From positions 124,001-188,000 of the IMG/VR virus record IMGVR_UViG_3300042934_000594: DNA of 64,000 nt, one strand, 5' to 3'. The notes beneath the pieces are model-generated. The model saw only the letters and a list, made by a program, of their open reading frames with translations, was not told the DNA's origin and did no database searches. The first letter of the stretch is position 1. Every line of letters begins with the position of its first letter. The translations under genes and the position numbers were made by a program. Positions 18,575 to 47,436 of this stretch are shown one piece after another.

Positions 18575-18641
18575 CCCGGTCTCAGTGTTTCTAAGTGACT
18601 GCTTAGCGGCATTGAACAACTCCTACGTAGGAACACCATCC

Positions 18642-20852
18642 ATGGATAAGCTGAAGCAACTCTTTCTGGGCCGTAAGAATGGCGCCGTAGCCGCCAACTT
18701 CTCGGTTCAGGCATTCGTCAAAACTCTGAACGACCAAGGCACTGCCGTTGGTAGCGTTCTGGCGGTAAACCCGGGTCTGACGCAGTCGATTGGTACCGAA
18801 GCATTCGGCGACATCGGTGGCGAAGAAGCAAACGCAGTTGCCGACCTGTACAGCGGTATCAGCGACACCATTCGCGACCTGGGCTTTGAAGCCTTCGCAA
18901 CCCAGCACAAGATCCCTGCCCGCGTTCAGGAAAACCAAATCCTGGCCGCTTCCATGGCTGCGATCGCTGCTGGCGACGAACAGCGCTACAAGAAAGCGCT
19001 GCGCGGCATGGGCAATGCCAAGGCTCTGGGCGCCAACCAGTTCGCTGGTAACCCACAGCTGGCCGGTCCTTTCGGTTCGATCGAAGTCTTCAAGGATTCG
19101 ACCGGTCTGGAAAACTACAACGAGAAGTCGCAGCGCGATTTCCGTGTGGTCACCATCGGCTACAACCTGACCGCTGTTCGCCAAGACCCCTTCGGCGAAG
19201 CGATCTACCCAACTTCCGTCGTTAACCCGACTGAAGGCGGCGTTGTTCAGATCCTGCCATACGCAGTGGTCATGAAAGACGTGTTCCACGCAGTCACTGG
19301 CCAGCGTCTGGCCAACGAAGAAATCAACATGGTTGAAGCCTTCCGTGATCCTTCGATCCTGGAAGACGTGTCCACTTCGCTGACTCCAGTAGTCGACGAG
19401 AAAGGCACCAACCTGAACGTCTTCGTTCCGGCTACTCTGATCGCGCCGAAGCCGGTTGAAACCGACCACGGCGGCACGCTGATGACGGCTCCGCTGAAAA
19501 TCGGCGCCAAGTTCGACCTGATCGGCGTTTCGAACCGCAACCAGCTGGTAGCTGGCAACGTTCTGGACGTGACCGACACCATCGACCCAGCTCTGAAGCT
19601 GAAGTCGATCATCGTCACCATCCAGGGCAAAGCTCACCGCTTCCAGACTGACCGCATCCCAACTGCGGTGTTCCAGCCTGCGCTGATCGGCGACACCCGT
19701 ACTGCCCAGCTTCACTTCACCAGTGAAGACCTGGTTCTGAACGGCGACATCCGCGCTGTCGACGGCTCCACCGTCACTGGCATCACCGAGTTCGCCAACC
19801 GCAAGTGGACTGCTCGCCTGAGCGTTTCCCTCAGCGGTTCGATCAGCACCTCCAAAGGCGACTGCTGGATCACTGCGACCCCGGTCATCGTTGAGAAGCT
19901 GTTCGACGAAACCGGCGACAAGCTGGACCAGACTGCTGGCGACGCTGAAACCGTCCTGGAAACTCTGGGCGAGATCGTTGTAGTTGGTTACGAGCTCGAC
20001 GCTCGCTTCACCAACACCAACCGTCGTGAGCGCGGTCACCTGCTGCAAACTCGTGCGCTGCAATTCCGCTACTCGATCCCGATGCACGCTCCGATCACCC
20101 TGCCGCTGTCCACCATGGACGACGAAGGTCCGGGCGAAGTCGTGAAGGCGCTGACTGTTGCCACCAACATCCGCAACTCCAACAACGCGGTCACCCGCGT
20201 GCTGAACTACACCGCACAGCTGAAAGAAGTTGTCGGTAACGGTTTCGACCGTCCGAAGTTCGGCGCTGTTGAAGGCGCGCTGTCGGCACTGATGCGTCCG
20301 ACCTACCGCTACAAGAAGCTGGATCTGGTCCAGGCACTTGACACCATCCGTTCGAGCGATCGTTGGGATGACGTTACTTGCGCGATCATGAACTGCATCA
20401 AGTCGATGCTGTTCCCAGCGTACCGCGATTCGAACATCGAAGCGGTGTTCCGCACCGTGACCGGTAACCAAGACGAGCGTCCGAAGTTCATTCTGGCGAC
20501 CGACAAGGAAATCGCGAACTACCTGATGACGTCGGGCGACGACCGTACCATCGGTCCGTACCTCAAGTACGACATCGTGTCCACCAACAACATCCGTTTC
20601 GACGGTAAGTTGCTGGTCCTGCCAACTCGCGAGAACCCATCCGAAAACGACATCCTGTCCTTCGGTCAGTTCTACTACGTGCCGACCATCGTTGCTGACC
20701 TCAACATCAGCCGCAACGGTCAGGTATCGCGCGAGATCGCTGCCGTGCCGTTCAACCTGCACGTGAACAACATCCCATTCGTTCTGGAAATCGACATCGT
20801 CGGTCTGAAAGAAGTCATGGGCTCTTCGTTGTACAACAGCAAGCTGGGCTGA
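18642..20852 (+). CDS. Major capsid protein (phiKZ gp120-like)
   Basis: ATG 18642 after AGGAA; 736 aa; extreme codon bias; propeptide with GTE/GFE/GLE sites (TGLE-NYNEK); size and synteny with the helicase and RNAP genes match. Confidence 0.9.
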   Translation: MDKLKQLFLGRKNGAVAANFSVQAFVKTLNDQGTAVGSVLAVNPGLTQSIGTEAFGDIGGEEANAVADLYSGISDTIRDLGFEAFATQHKIPARVQENQILAASMAAIAAGDEQRYKKALRGMGNAKALGANQFAGNPQLAGPFGSIEVFKDSTGLENYNEKSQRDFRVVTIGYNLTAVRQDPFGEAIYPTSVVNPTEGGVVQILPYAVVMKDVFHAVTGQRLANEEINMVEAFRDPSILEDVSTSLTPVVDEKGTNLNVFVPATLIAPKPVETDHGGTLMTAPLKIGAKFDLIGVSNRNQLVAGNVLDVTDTIDPALKLKSIIVTIQGKAHRFQTDRIPTAVFQPALIGDTRTAQLHFTSEDLVLNGDIRAVDGSTVTGITEFANRKWTARLSVSLSGSISTSKGDCWITATPVIVEKLFDETGDKLDQTAGDAETVLETLGEIVVVGYELDARFTNTNRRERGHLLQTRALQFRYSIPMHAPITLPLSTMDDEGPGEVVKALTVATNIRNSNNAVTRVLNYTAQLKEVVGNGFDRPKFGAVEGALSALMRPTYRYKKLDLVQALDTIRSSDRWDDVTCAIMNCIKSMLFPAYRDSNIEAVFRTVTGNQDERPKFILATDKEIANYLMTSGDDRTIGPYLKYDIVSTNNIRFDGKLLVLPTRENPSENDILSFGQFYYVPTIVADLNISRNGQVSREIAAVPFNLHVNNIPFVLEIDIVGLKEVMGSSLYNSKLG

Positions 20853-20927
20853 AAAAGTACCGCCCGGTTACTTGAGTCCGGGGCAACTCGGACTCTTGAG
20901 GATGGGCGTGTGCGCCTACTCGAGTGA
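20853..20927 (+). other. In-frame 24-codon extension after the capsid UGA (candidate readthrough tail) containing a GCAA-tetraloop hairpin
   Basis: TGA-AAA-AGT-ACC-GCC-CGG-TTA-CTT-GAG... gives KSTARLLESGATRTLEDGRVRLLE-stop; 15/21 identical to the C-terminus of ORF 45579-46127. Confidence 0.7.
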
Positions 20928-20928
20928 C

Positions 20929-20968
20929 CATAATAAAAGCCCGGCTTCGGCCGGGCTTTTATGCCGTC
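20929..20968 (+). terminator. Capsid-operon terminator followed by TATGCCGTC
   Basis: AAAAGCCCGGC-TTCG-GCCGGGCTTTT-ATGCCGTC, located after the extension's stop codon. Confidence 0.8.
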
Positions 20969-20983
20969 TCAATGTATTTAAAA

Positions 20984-21007
20984 TGAGGTCTATATCATTC
21001 TTGAGAG
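20984..21007 (+). promoter_or_regulatory. Degenerate copy of the early promoter motif
   Basis: ATGAGGTC-TATATCAT-TCTT-GAGA, same spacing as the four copies, AT-rich upstream. Confidence 0.45.
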
Positions 21008-21031
21008 CATTGACCCAATAGGAGCACACTC

Positions 21032-21511
21032 ATGGGTTATTTATCCGAACTCGGACGACGCTTCCTCGCACAAGAGGAAAACTCCGAGTCACCCAGCGCC
21101 ACATTTGCAAGCGATGGCCCATCACCATCACCCCCCTCTAACGAACCCACTCCAGTAGAAATTCCCATCGCTGAAGAAAATACTCCACCGCTCAATACTA
21201 CAGGTGTCAGTCCTGCCGTTATGTCCGGTTCTGGAACAGCAACCCATGTTCGCCCACCGGGTGGGCGTGCGGTCCCTGCTGGTCAAGAGCGAGATGCGTT
21301 AATCGCGCGTCTTGAGGAGGCCAACTTCGGAAAATCTACTAGGCGAGGAACAGGCTCAACCCAAGCCCACTTCTGCTCCTCGCCTCAAACCCAGTGGCAA
21401 GAAAATACTGCATCGCACCGGAACGAAGGCAGGGCGCAACTTCCGCCCGACCTGAGTATCGCGCAACGGCAGTCCACTTTCTTCTCAGTGACAGCGGACG
21501 GACACCGATGA
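21032..21511 (+). CDS. Hypothetical, probably disordered Pro/Ser/Thr-rich protein
   Basis: AGGAG RBS; 159 aa; its TGA directly precedes the next in-frame ATG. Confidence 0.5.
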   Translation: MGYLSELGRRFLAQEENSESPSATFASDGPSPSPPSNEPTPVEIPIAEENTPPLNTTGVSPAVMSGSGTATHVRPPGGRAVPAGQERDALIARLEEANFGKSTRRGTGSTQAHFCSSPQTQWQENTASHRNEGRAQLPPDLSIAQRQSTFFSVTADGHR

Positions 21512-44311: not shown

Positions 44312-45160
44312 TTACGCTAGCAGCTTCTTGGCGCGGGTGTATTCAGCTGCCAGCTTGGTGTCGTATTGATTTTTGGCGTAGCCTGCACCGTTGTACAGGC
44401 GGGCGAAATTCACCCAGTCTTGCGTTTGGATGGCCTTGAGCAAACCGCGCTGAGACTGGATAAACTTGACGAAAGCTTCCAGCTGCATACGTTCACTGAC
44501 GTACATCGAGGCGACGAACGCATCGACGCTGGCAAAGCCCAGCAGTTCCCAGTGGAAGCCCATGATCTGGTACGCCCCCCACGAGGCCGATTCCAGCGCT
44601 GCGGCCTTATTGATGAGCTTAGCCTTCTCCAGGCGGTCGTATTCCCGTGAACCGCCGATGTAACCGCCGGACTTGGTATTCACCAGACCCGGTTGGTTGG
44701 CCATGAACGGCGCTGGCTTGATGTCGTGCTCATCGAGCATGCGGTACATGATGTGGCGTTCGAACAGAATCACGGGACGACCGTCATCAAAGAAGCCGTG
44801 ACCGCGTGATTCCACGGCGTTGACGCACATCACTGACGCAACGTCTGTGCGCAGTGCACCGGCCGCCCATACAAGGTCAGCTTGACTGAGCAGTTTCAGG
44901 CTGACAGGGCAGCAGCCCCGAAGGATCTTGATGGTCTTAGGACCCGCAATTCCATCAGCTACCAGGTTGTTCTTGGTCTGAACAGCCCGGACGAACTTTT
45001 CGGTGGTAGGGCCGAAATCGCCATCGGGTTTGAGTTGGTAACCGGCGTTGACCAGAAGCTGTTGCAGCTCCAGGACCTCGGCACCTTTATCACCACGACG
45101 CAATACGGCATCTTTCGCAACTGCGACCCGATCTTCGGCGCCCAGTGTCGACAGATCCAT
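44312..45160 (-). CDS. Modular endolysin: peptidoglycan-binding domain plus DUF3380-type N-acetylmuramidase
   Basis: ATG 45160 after AGGAG; LRRGDKGAEVLELQQLL..DGDFGP.T..DGIAGPKT; VESRGHGF, FERH, SASWGAYQIMGFH, FARLYNG. Confidence 0.9.
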   Translation of the reverse strand: MDLSTLGAEDRVAVAKDAVLRRGDKGAEVLELQQLLVNAGYQLKPDGDFGPTTEKFVRAVQTKNNLVADGIAGPKTIKILRGCCPVSLKLLSQADLVWAAGALRTDVASVMCVNAVESRGHGFFDDGRPVILFERHIMYRMLDEHDIKPAPFMANQPGLVNTKSGGYIGGSREYDRLEKAKLINKAAALESASWGAYQIMGFHWELLGFASVDAFVASMYVSERMQLEAFVKFIQSQRGLLKAIQTQDWVNFARLYNGAGYAKNQYDTKLAAEYTRAKKLLA

Positions 45161-45203
45161 ATTTGTTACTCCTAGGGTGGGTGTTGCATTAAGTGAGGTT
45201 GTG

Positions 45204-45575
45204 TTATTGAGGAATGTCGCGTGCGATCTGCTCGGCCACTGCGGCTGCAACGTCAAAGCTCTCAAGCTCCTCCGATGACGACAGCCGGTGGATAATGTCA
45301 GCCACACGTTGCTCAGCACGGATGCATCGTTCCAGGTAACTTCCGACCCCATACACGTAGGTCGCAATATTGGCAGCGTTCAGTACGATCGTCTCTTTCC
45401 CACTCCACCAGTCCAGACTGGGTGGGGCATTCTCACGCATGAGAACTTGATGAGCCGACAGCAGGTTGGCGTACGTGCCCTGATTAACGTTGAGAAGATG
45501 TCCTTCAACGGTGACCGAATGGGTGAGTGCTTCGAGTTCACCCATCAGGCCGACAATGCATCTATCCACGCTCAC
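45204..45575 (-). CDS. DUF4376-like fibre chaperone
   Basis: 123 aa; AEQRVADII..LSSSEELESFDV tail similar to 37977-38633. Confidence 0.45.
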   Translation of the reverse strand: MSVDRCIVGLMGELEALTHSVTVEGHLLNVNQGTYANLLSAHQVLMRENAPPSLDWWSGKETIVLNAANIATYVYGVGSYLERCIRAEQRVADIIHRLSSSEELESFDVAAAVAEQIARDIPQ

Positions 45576-45578
45576 TCC

Positions 45579-46127
45579 TTAAGCGGTTTCGAGCAAACGA
45601 ATGCTCCCGTCTTCTAACTGCCGTGGTGTGCCGTCTTCGAGCAAGCGCGCGTTCGGGTTGACGCCAGAGCTGATGACTTCAATCTGCACTTCTCCGTAAT
45701 ACACATAGGAGCTGCTCAGGATCTTCATCGTGTAGATAAACGGCTTAGCACCGTCGCTCAACGTGGTGTTGCCCCAATCCACGTCAGTCGCGTCCAAGAA
45801 ACGGTTACGCGAACGGTTGATCTCCAGGGCAATGGAGCGGGCGGTGATCGCCCCTTGCACCACGATCTTGGGTTTAAGGCCCAAGCTCTTGGCAATGTCA
45901 AGGCGCCGGAACGCCAACCAACTTTTGATGTTGGTCCACTGGTTGTCCAGCTCCACAAAGGAGCGACCAGGAATCAGCGAGGTAGGACTGTGTGTCAGGT
46001 CACCGAAGACGGCGTACTCTTCACGAACGTCCAGATGGGGCAGACCTTTCTGGATCAGTGCCACCAGGGCCTGTTTACCAGGAAGGTCGTAGGGGAAATC
46101 GTCATCAATGGGGATCAGAGTGTTCAT
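45579..46127 (-). CDS. Virion structural protein with C-terminal RLLEDG repeats
   Basis: FRRLDI and SSSYVYYGEV module as in 27268/27709; ends NPNARLLEDGTPRQLEDGSIRLLETA. Start at 46127 is a best guess. Confidence 0.6.
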   Translation of the reverse strand: MNTLIPIDDDFPYDLPGKQALVALIQKGLPHLDVREEYAVFGDLTHSPTSLIPGRSFVELDNQWTNIKSWLAFRRLDIAKSLGLKPKIVVQGAITARSIALEINRSRNRFLDATDVDWGNTTLSDGAKPFIYTMKILSSSYVYYGEVQIEVISSGVNPNARLLEDGTPRQLEDGSIRLLETA

Positions 46128-46182
46128 GAGGGCCTCGGGGACTGGTTTAAAAAGTGAGTCCACATAGCATATCAATTCGAGG

Positions 46183-46221
46183 CGGCATAACGCCCTTCCC
46201 GTCAGGGAGGGGCGTATGTCG
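46183..46221. terminator. Hairpin flanked by CGGCATA and TATGTCG
   Basis: ACGCCCTTCCC-GTCA-GGGAGGGGCGT. Confidence 0.7.
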
Positions 46222-46222
46222 G

Positions 46223-46648
46223 TTAAGTGTTGCCGTTGTTCTGTGCGTTGTTCCAACCTTCGATCAGTTGCCCGATCAAACCGAACGTGCCTTTGATCAT
46301 CTCCATCAGTAGATCAAAGTAGTTGTGGCTCAGTGGGGTGTCGTTAAACACTTCCGCTAAAGCGATTAAAACAAACACAACAACCAACGGGACCGCAAGG
46401 ACCAGAATGGCAGTCTGGTAGCTGTCTTTCCCACGAACAGCCCCCAAGCTCTTATTGAGCATGCGGTCTTGCTTGACCTGGTCCGGGCATTGGTACACCT
46501 GGCTCAGGACGGTACTCCCTGGCATATCAAGCGTGATAGGGGTGTCGCCACCCAATGTTGCATTTACAAAAGCCCGAATCGTTTTGGAAAATGGACTTTT
46601 AGACAATGGTTCATCCCCGAGATCAATCAGTGCCTCCTCCAGTGTCAT
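46223..46648 (-). CDS. Membrane protein, holin candidate
   Basis: One TM segment (AILVLAVPLVVVFVLIALAEVF) plus an amphipathic tail; overlaps the end of the o-spanin gene. Confidence 0.35.
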   Translation of the reverse strand: MTLEEALIDLGDEPLSKSPFSKTIRAFVNATLGGDTPITLDMPGSTVLSQVYQCPDQVKQDRMLNKSLGAVRGKDSYQTAILVLAVPLVVVFVLIALAEVFNDTPLSHNYFDLLMEMIKGTFGLIGQLIEGWNNAQNNGNT

Positions 46649-46973
46649 GGTGGTTCTCCAAAGCTGATTGCTTTTTGTCGTATAACTGCCGCAGCTTTTC
46701 TAGCTGCTTGTTACAGTTTCCGACTGCATCGGTCTGCGCGTCGGCGTAGTCCTTCATCACCAAAAATCGCGCTTCCCATTTCGTGGGCGCCTTGGGGTAG
46801 AGGCGTTGAGCGTAGATCAACTCTTCGGCCGTCGGCGGTACCGCAACGTAGCAGTTTGCGGTCAGGGTACTAGGGGGTGCAACCAGGGTTGGCTCCGGTG
46901 GCGGTGCAGTAACGTGCGTGCATCCGGTCAGCCAGGTCAGTGAGAGCAGCGATAACCAAAGGATCATCTTCAT
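46623..46973 (-). CDS. Outer-membrane spanin (Rz1-like lipoprotein)
   Basis: MKMILWLSLLSLTWLTG-C lipobox, Pro-rich segment, C-terminal coiled coil with Cys; overlaps the 3' end of the i-spanin gene. Confidence 0.75.
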   Translation of the reverse strand: MKMILWLSLLSLTWLTGCTHVTAPPPEPTLVAPPSTLTANCYVAVPPTAEELIYAQRLYPKAPTKWEARFLVMKDYADAQTDAVGNCNKQLEKLRQLYDKKQSALENHHDTGGGTD

Positions 46974-47436
46974 CTGCTGGAGCGGGCGAGACAGTAGGTT
47001 TGACAGCATGTGGCTTTTCCTTGCGGACCGATTTTATTTGAGCTGATGTTCGAGCAGCGCTTGCAGTTGAGCGAGTCGGTACAGCAACCCGAGCAGCTGG
47101 TACAGGCTGAACATCATGAGCGCCACCAGCAGAAGGCTCAGGATGGGCCGTCGCCAGGAAGGCGGCGGAATCAGCTTGCCGACTCTTTGCTTGAAGCTCT
47201 CGGCGTTCGGTCGTCGCTTGAACATATTCAGCCACAGCCTTGTCAGCGGCTTGGTAGGTCTTGGCTTGGAAGGCGTTGGCCCGCTCCAAGCGTTGGTTGT
47301 CCACACCCAGCACAATGTTTTTGTCTTTAGCGGCCTGCCACTTGTTAAAGCTGACGTAGCCCACTACCCCTGCTACCGCAAGTACTCCGAGCAGCACCCA
47401 CTCAAACCACTTCACACCCTTGAGTAGTTGAAACAT
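46870..47436 (-). CDS. Inner-membrane spanin (Rz-like)
   Basis: N-terminal TM segment, coiled coil, C-terminal Cys residues (YCTATGANPGC). Confidence 0.75.
   Translation of the reverse strand: MFQLLKGVKWFEWVLLGVLAVAGVVGYVSFNKWQAAKDKNIVLGVDNQRLERANAFQAKTYQAADKAVAEYVQATTERRELQAKSRQADSAAFLATAHPEPSAGGAHDVQPVPAARVAVPTRSTASAARTSAQIKSVRKEKPHAVKPTVSPAPADEDDPLVIAALTDLADRMHARYCTATGANPGCTP

Follow-up and report, generated by a model that had tools for sequence, protein, structure and literature searches.

The major capsid gene of this phiKZ-like jumbo phage was found to end in a UGA codon followed by the presence of a conserved in-frame peptide of 24 codons. The capsid genes of phiKZ, PhiPA3, 201phi2-1, Noxifer and Phabio also end in UGA, and the peptides are 24-30 codons long. 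The conservation points to a maintained stop-codon readthrough, which probably (about 0.75) gives a minority of the capsid subunits a small C-terminal module, although translation of the tail is inferred from evolution and no protein, peptide or ribosome footprint evidence exists. No description of the readthrough, of a gp120 extension or of the repeat was found in the literature that could be searched, and no Ribo-seq study of phiKZ was found. The features are listed in Table 1, where positions refer to the window, that is, the whole 64-kb stretch of DNA that was analysed.

Table 1. Positions of the capsid gene, the in-frame tail and the associated features in the window.
Feature	Position	Strand	Description
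Major capsid protein gene	18585..20849	+	phiKZ gp120 family; likely start ATG 18642, first possible GTG 18585
First stop	20850..20852	+	UGA followed by A; proposed leaky stop
In-frame tail	20853..20924	+	24 codons; KSTA linker, then repeats RLLESGAT (20865-20888), RTLEDGRV (20889-20912) and RLLE (20913-20924)
Hairpin in the tail RNA	20874..20895	+	9 bp, GCAA loop, one G-U pair, 21 nt after the stop; core of a larger fold spanning about 20866-20929
Second stop	20925..20927	+	TGA; end of the proposed extended isoform
Terminator-like hairpin	20935..20960	+	GC-rich, UUCG loop, flanked by A and T runs; followed by a conserved TATGCCGT
phiKZ gp143 homologue	45579..46127	-	predicted DUF7941-type fold; the C-terminus (45647-45588) carries the same three-repeat module

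The capsid ORF was found to match PhiKZ_MCP (Pfam PF25620) at E 7.6e-215, with 715 bits against a cut-off of 27, and phrog_3231 at E 3e-229. The ORF ends in GGC-TGA-AAA-AGT and the frame stays open for KSTARLLESGATRTLEDGRVRLLE up to the second stop. The original prediction, in which the UGA was proposed as a programmed readthrough site adding a peptide shared with another virion protein, was confirmed in every statement about the sequence, with the small correction that the capsid gene most likely starts at the ATG and not at the first possible GTG. The terminator-like hairpin was read directly from the sequence and was not called by a simple terminator scan, whereas the same element was found 5-35 nt after the second stop in nearly all relatives.

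The gp143 homologue was found to end in ARLLEDGTPRQLEDGSIRLLETA, which gives 15 of 21 identities with the capsid tail without gaps, and 12 of the 15 identical residues use different codons, so that the likeness is at the protein level and not at the DNA level. An HMM of the C-termini of 22 gp143 homologues, from which the window's own protein was left out, was searched against all 2,116 six-frame stop-to-stop segments of the window and scored the tail at E = 9e-10, whereas the next best segment scored E = 1.9. Doubled copies of the pattern R-x-[LIVT]-E-x-G were found only at these two loci in the 64 kb. In a tblastn search of the tail against 2.3 Gb of phage DNA, every hit was either the stretch after the Phabio capsid gene or a gp143 C-terminus.

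The 3′ flanks of the capsid genes of the relatives were compared, as the original prediction had suggested, and the result favours the readthrough reading. The capsid genes of phiKZ, PA1C, 201phi2-1 and Noxifer were all found to contain UGA followed by the presence of an in-frame R-x-x-E-x-G tail. Across IMG/VR, metagenomes and isolates, 23 distinct tails were found in about seven genera including phiKZ itself, and the first stop was UGA in all of them (21 of 21 unique tail-bearing relatives plus 2 more from metagenomes). No sense codon was found at the stop position in any relative. The base after the UGA was A in 15, G in 5, C in 1 and T in 0. The second stop was variable, with TAA in 13, TGA in 5 and TAG in 3. 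About 14 distinct tail-less relatives were all found to end in TAA, and on the capsid tree three of them (designated L006, L077 and L078) are independent losses inside the tail clade, each with a change from TGA to TAA. In the genes of the window, TGA was only 13 of 54 stops. The sequences are related, hence the counts are not independent events. The distant Chimalliviridae LucasX, RAY, RP12, FBKp24, SEGD1 and EL were found to lack the tail.

All the indels in the tails were whole codons, and no tail was found to contain an internal stop or its own start codon. The invariant R8, E11, G13 and G22 were encoded by mixed synonymous codons; for example, G13 was GGT in 7, GGA in 7, GGC in 4 and GGG in 3. 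The pN/pS was 0.63 over all pairs, the lowest of the six frames (the others were 0.77-1.13), and 0.50 for pairs under 30% divergence, which shows only moderate constraint. The comparison of PA1C with HPP-Temi showed 4 synonymous and 0 non-synonymous changes. An independent small peptide translated by reinitiation after the UGA is very unlikely, as no ATG, GTG or TTG was found in frame before the motif either in the window or in phiKZ-type tails, and no ribosome-binding site was found. It is also improbable that the tail is a decaying remnant of a module which an ancestral capsid protein carried constitutively and which was cut off by a nonsense mutation. The relative designated L015 contains its extension behind TAA, which is hard to read through in bacteria and counts against the readthrough reading, and which could be such a fresh truncation, and tails have been lost at least three times. 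However, the tail persists across about seven genera whose flanking non-coding DNA no longer aligns, without frameshift or internal stop, with pN/pS below 1 and with an invariant UGA.

The whole tail RNA of the window was found to fold at -42.1 kcal/mol (z -4.5). The GNRA hairpin noted in the original prediction is specific to this phage and was not conserved in the relatives, which appear to share a different, longer stem starting about 8-9 nt after the UGA. All 21 tail RNAs were found to fold better than shuffles, with a mean z of -1.86 against -0.65 for upstream coding controls, and the shared stem (GGG..CCGT with ACGG..CCC) pairs in 71% of cells against 38-49% in slid controls. The core pairs of this stem barely covary and are made of the Arg and Asp-Gly codons themselves. 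A stimulatory RNA hairpin is possible but not shown, and a conserved stem may contribute to the nucleotide conservation. The roughly 80 nt between the capsid stop and the terminator might alternatively be a structured untranslated RNA element, for example for mRNA stability or 3′-end formation, with the peptide-like reading as a by-product. This is unlikely, as the variation is concentrated at the third codon positions in the capsid frame, the match to the gp143 C-termini is at the protein level, and an RNA element does not explain why the stop is always UGA or why it turns to TAA when the tail is lost. An Rfam scan of 20700-21100 gave only sub-threshold hits driven by the terminator hairpin.

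In the favoured reading, most ribosomes terminate at the first stop and make the normal major capsid protein, whereas a minority read the UGA as a sense codon, most simply through near-cognate tRNA-Trp, and continue to the second stop just before the terminator hairpin. The product would be a minor isoform with a C-terminal module of three 8-residue R-x-L-E-D-G-x-x repeats, the last cut short to R-x-L-E. Decoding by a dedicated route, such as selenocysteine insertion directed by the downstream stem-loop or a phage-encoded UGA suppressor tRNA, is doubtful. A stem-loop lies shortly after the UGA in most relatives and jumbo phages carry tRNA genes, but no tRNA gene was found within the 64-kb window of the 269-kb genome, and no RNA family match passed its threshold, without the use of a bacterial SECIS-specific model. 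The loop and spacing of the stem differed between subgroups, and selenocysteine in a protein made in about 1,600 copies per virion is implausible unless insertion is inefficient.

In the phiKZ capsid, the C-terminal arms of the subunits meet at the centre of each hexamer, and on the penton they reach the outer decoration protein gp244 (PMC11297242). The module would therefore be displayed at capsomer centres, in a few to some tens of the roughly 1,615 subunits, which would point to a natural low-copy display site in jumbo phages. Published cryo-EM models of phiKZ stop at residue 747 and report no extra density at capsomer centres, which is weak evidence either way because a minority, flexible tail would be averaged out. 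phiKZ is the model nucleus-forming jumbo phage, its capsid has been solved at 3.5 Å and its virion proteome has been mapped several times. A second, recoded product of its most abundant structural gene appears to have been missed in every annotated genome of the clade.

In the established case of the Q-beta (Qubevirus) A1 protein, a leaky UGA ends the coat gene and is read by a normal tRNA, and a few per cent of coat subunits gain a C-terminal extension that is built into the capsid. Q-beta is an ssRNA phage with a small T=3 coat and a folded extension of about 196 residues needed for infection, whereas the present phage is a dsDNA jumbo phage with an HK97-fold T=27 capsid protein and a repeat module of 24-30 residues. 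In T7/T3 gene 10A/10B and in the capsid genes of Lactobacillus phage A2 and Listeria phages A118, A500 and PSA, one gene gives a major product and a minor C-terminally extended product that is incorporated into the shell, and the extension is often an Ig-like domain (PMC5009743). Those cases use -1 or +1 ribosomal frameshifting, whereas the present extension lies in the zero frame behind a stop codon and, if confirmed, would be a clear case of conserved readthrough in a dsDNA tailed phage capsid gene. In murine leukaemia virus gag-pol, an in-frame stop is followed by a spacer of about 8 nt and a structured RNA, comparable to the stem starting 8-9 nt after the UGA in most phiKZ-type tails, but that system is eukaryotic, uses UAG and has a proven pseudoknot, whereas the role of the structure is unproven here.

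Ig-like domains are known to be added to phage structural proteins by recoding, with a proposed role in weak surface adhesion (Fraser et al. 2006, cited in PMC5009743). The tail of the window is not an Ig domain but a short octad-repeat module, for which a profile search of the PDB gave nothing significant. However, the relative designated L009 was found to contain UGA-A followed by an in-frame extension containing Big_2 (Pfam E 4e-9), and L015 was found to contain Big_2 plus the repeats at the same post-stop site. The R-x-L-E-x-G module was also found at the extreme C-terminus of unrelated phage tail proteins (phrog_1101, Phage-tail_3) and of other ORFs. The module is therefore most likely an outward-facing adhesion or docking element, and it would define a widespread and structurally unknown C-terminal module of phage tail, baseplate and capsid proteins.

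The gp143 homologue of the window was found to match phrog_2935 at E 6.5e-25 and PHIKZ143 by tblastn, and the module was the most conserved part of the family. The protein scored only 13.2 bits against DUF7941 (PF25613, cut-off 27), whereas 7 homologues carry PF25613 and the AF2 model (pLDDT 85) matched the phiKZ peripheral baseplate chain 9xqd_0 at E 7e-6 (TM 0.56/0.66), which suggests a DUF7941-type fold. DUF7941 proteins are virion and baseplate-associated and are proposed to form head-to-tail filaments (preprint 10.64898/2026.04.21.720040), and the capsid tail contains only the module and none of the DUF7941 globular part. In 201phi2-1 the gp143-family protein was identified in virions by mass spectrometry according to the record annotation, whereas gp143 has also been reported as a cytoplasmic lysis regulator and described as a holin regulator (PMC12894885). 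A more speculative and unlikely possibility is that the module is a docking or co-assembly tag shared by capsid and baseplate-fibre proteins, by which the few readthrough subunits recruit gp143 or other DUF7941 filament proteins or bind the same host-surface ligand. The head of phiKZ-like phages would then be a second adsorption organ, with the UGA context setting its valency and the Big_2 domain as an interchangeable alternative. The capsid tail and the gp143 C-terminus were compared within the same genome in 17 genomes and were found to share only the consensus, without genome-specific matching. The gp143 protein was also found to keep the module in phages without a capsid tail (designated L103-L105 and L107), and the capsid tail is therefore not needed for the module of gp143.

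The window, a piece of an uncultured phiKZ-like jumbo phage (IMG/VR contig IMGVR_UViG_3300042934_000594 of 269 kb), with 56% G+C, was found to contain a phiKZ-type major capsid protein ORF (Pfam PF25620, E 7.6e-215) directly after a gp119 homologue. The gene was found to end in GGC-TGA-A, followed by the presence of 24 further codons in the same frame up to a second TGA. The tail RNA as a whole was found to fold unusually well (-42.1 kcal/mol, z -4.5). The C-terminal peptide of a minus-strand ORF elsewhere in the window matched the tail at 15 of 21 positions. An HMM made only from other phages' homologues of that ORF found the capsid tail at E 9e-10 among all six-frame segments of the window, whereas the next best segment scored E 1.9. 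The original prediction, that the capsid frame continues past its UGA with a peptide shared with another protein, was correct in this observation, which is not due to chance.

Coordinates of the features in the window and in related contigs
Feature	Location	Strand	Remarks
Major capsid protein ORF	window 18585-20852		First possible start GTG 18585
More likely capsid start	window 18642		ATG preceded by AGGAAC, giving 736 residues
Hairpin in the tail	window 20874-20895		9 bp, GCAA loop
Second stop	window 20925-20927		TGA
GC-rich hairpin after the second stop	window 20935-20960		UUCG loop, A and T flanks
Conserved TTTATG(C/T)CGT	window 20957-20969		Right after the terminator hairpin
Lysis cassette	window 44312-47009	-	Arranged like phiKZ gp141-144
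Endolysin	window 44312-45367	-	With a peptidoglycan-binding domain
gp143 homologue	window 45579-46127	-	Ends in the peptide matching the capsid tail
Small membrane protein	window 46223-46648	-	
Protein with lipobox-like LTGC	window 46623-47009	-	
Capsid extension of L009 (IMGVR_UViG_3300043122_000192)	L009:2140-2751		Behind TGA-A
Capsid extension of L015 (IMGVR_UViG_3300037502_002993)	L015:2155-2445		Behind TAA-C
Module after FN3-like ORF of L064 (IMGVR_UViG_3300022918_000013)	L064:4100-4200		-1 frame

The 3' flank of the capsid gene was translated in phiKZ, PA1C, 201phi2-1 and Noxifer. All four genes were found to end in TGA and to continue in frame with two to three R-x-x-E-x-G repeats. Wider sampling of IMG/VR, metagenomes and further isolates gave 23 distinct tails of 24-30 codons from phiKZ, PhiPA3, PA1C/HPP-Temi, 201phi2-1, Noxifer, Phabio, Psa21 and uncultured relatives, and every one was found to follow a TGA. 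None was annotated in the GenBank records examined, although HPP-Temi contained a gene call there in another frame. Right after the terminator hairpin nearly every relative was found to contain the conserved TTTATG(C/T)CGT, followed by the presence of a TATATTAC-like motif about 30-40 nt further on. These may be phage-polymerase promoter signals for the next gene, overlapping the T-run of the terminator.

The second stop of the same phages was TAA in 13, TGA in 5 and TAG in 3. Stop codons therefore do turn over at this evolutionary depth, yet the first stop was never found to change. About 14 distinct close relatives were found to lack a tail and all of them ended in TAA. Many tail-less capsid proteins (in the contigs L007, L008, L010, L012 and L032 and in the distant phages RAY, RP12 and SEGD1) were found to end in Thr/Pro/Gly-rich low-complexity linkers, for example ...TTTTSP, which look like a flexible stalk left without a domain. 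In a tree of the capsid C-terminal region the tail-bearing phages formed one supported clade (99/94), with three tail-less members (L006, L077 and L078) nested inside it as three independent losses, each with a change from TGA to TAA. A fourth parallel was found outside the clade, where L009 contained TGA-A followed by an extension whereas its sister contigs L010 and L012 kept the Thr/Gly-rich linker but ended in TAA with no extension. In this window TGA was found to end only 13 of 54 long ORFs. The base after the UGA was A in 15, G in 5, C in 1 and never T, and UGA-A is established as a weak termination signal in E. coli.

All length differences among the tails were found to be whole codons, and no internal stop and no start codon were found. 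The columns R8, E11, G13 and G22 were invariant and R17 and E20 were nearly so. They were found to use mixed synonymous codons, G13 being GGT in 7, GGA in 7, GGC in 4 and GGG in 3, whereas Arg was coded by both CGN and AGR. The Nei-Gojobori pN/pS was 0.63 over all pairs, the lowest of the six frames (0.77-1.13 in the others), and 0.50 for pairs under 30% divergence. The closest pairs showed mostly silent change, for example 4 synonymous and 0 non-synonymous changes between PA1C and HPP-Temi. Between the window's tail and its gp143 C-terminus, 12 of the 15 identical residues were found to be coded differently, and the likeness is thus kept at the peptide level. A decaying remnant fails to explain this codon-phase pattern, the protein-level match to gp143 and the link between UGA and the tail.

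The minus-strand ORF was found to be the homologue of phiKZ gp143. In 23 family members the C-terminal R-L-L-E-D-G-x-x, R-L-L-E-D-G-x-x, R-x-L-E module was the most conserved part. The AF2 model (pLDDT 85) was found to contain a globular part matching a chain of the phiKZ outer peripheral baseplate (9xqd_0) at E 7e-6, in agreement with the assignment of gp143 to the DUF7941 family in the Goslar preprint, although the profile match of the window's protein to DUF7941 was below the cut-off. In this model the module had a pLDDT of about 75, with short beta bridges at an 8-residue period. The 201phi2-1 homologue of gp143, gp228, was identified in virions by mass spectrometry according to its record annotation, whereas gp143 has also been reported to tune the holin (PMC12894885). 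The lysis cassette of the window was arranged like phiKZ gp141-144 (compare PMC12894885).

A DNA pattern scan of IMG/VR for two consecutive repeats found 21 loci. Besides capsid tails and gp143 genes, the module was found to close tail proteins of unrelated phages (phrog_1101, Phage-tail_3) and several proteins of unknown function, always within 0-2 residues of the C-terminus, whereas no PDB chain was found to carry it. It is therefore a mobile, terminal module of phage structural proteins with no solved structure. In the unrelated phage contig L064 the same three-repeat module was found in the -1 frame right after an FN3-like ORF ending in ...CCG GGG GAG CTA TAA. The run of five G is a possible -1 slip site, so the module may be appended there by frameshifting.

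The frame of the L009 capsid gene was found to continue for 203 codons containing a Big_2 Ig-like domain (Pfam E 4e-9). The extension of L015 contained a Big_2 domain plus RLTEDG-type repeats and was the only extension found behind a TAA, which could be a fresh truncation, an assembly error or another mechanism. Ig-like domains appended to capsid and tail proteins by recoding are well known (PMC5009743). This makes an outward-facing accessory role the most natural reading for the short module as well.

In the 3.5 Å phiKZ capsid structure the C-terminal arm (residues 728-747) of the six subunits forms a six-helix bundle around a pore at the hexamer centre, whereas in pentons the arm reaches the outer decoration protein gp244 (PMC11297242). 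An extension would therefore emerge at the capsomer centres. It was inferred that six extensions per hexamer might not be tolerated, which would explain a preference for sub-stoichiometric supply. With 1,615 subunits per capsid, readthrough of 1-5% would give roughly 16-80 modules per head.

All 21 tail RNAs were found to fold better than shuffles (mean z -1.86, against -0.65 for upstream coding controls), and many shared a long stem starting 8-9 nt after the UGA. On the alignment this stem paired in 71% of cells, against 38-49% for slid controls. However, its core pairs were invariant Arg and Asp-Gly codon bases and true covariation was sparse. A stimulatory structure is possible but was not shown. 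The GCAA-loop (GNRA) hairpin of the original prediction was found to be specific to this phage. A pure RNA element fails to explain the same three features as the decaying remnant does. No tRNA gene was found in the window and no Rfam family passed its threshold in a scan of the region around the tail. Selenocysteine insertion or a suppressor tRNA cannot be excluded, but nothing was found to support them.

The comparative evidence supports maintained UGA readthrough of the major capsid gene across the phiKZ, PhiPA3, 201phi2-1, Noxifer and Phabio clade, adding a small terminal module shared with baseplate and tail proteins, although translation of the tail, its rate and its function have yet to be shown. 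Capsid extension by recoding is already known, with Q-beta A1 the closest in mechanism and T7 10B the closest in virion type. No description of readthrough or extension of the phiKZ capsid protein was found in the literature, and the same holds for Ribo-seq of phiKZ and for the two phiKZ structural papers, the Goslar preprint and the TnSeq preprint, although most subscription journals were outside the search and an earlier mention cannot be ruled out. The gp143 homologues of phages whose capsid gene has no tail and ends in TAA (the gp143 loci L103-L105 and L107) were found to keep the C-terminal repeat module, which is therefore older and more widespread than the capsid tail.
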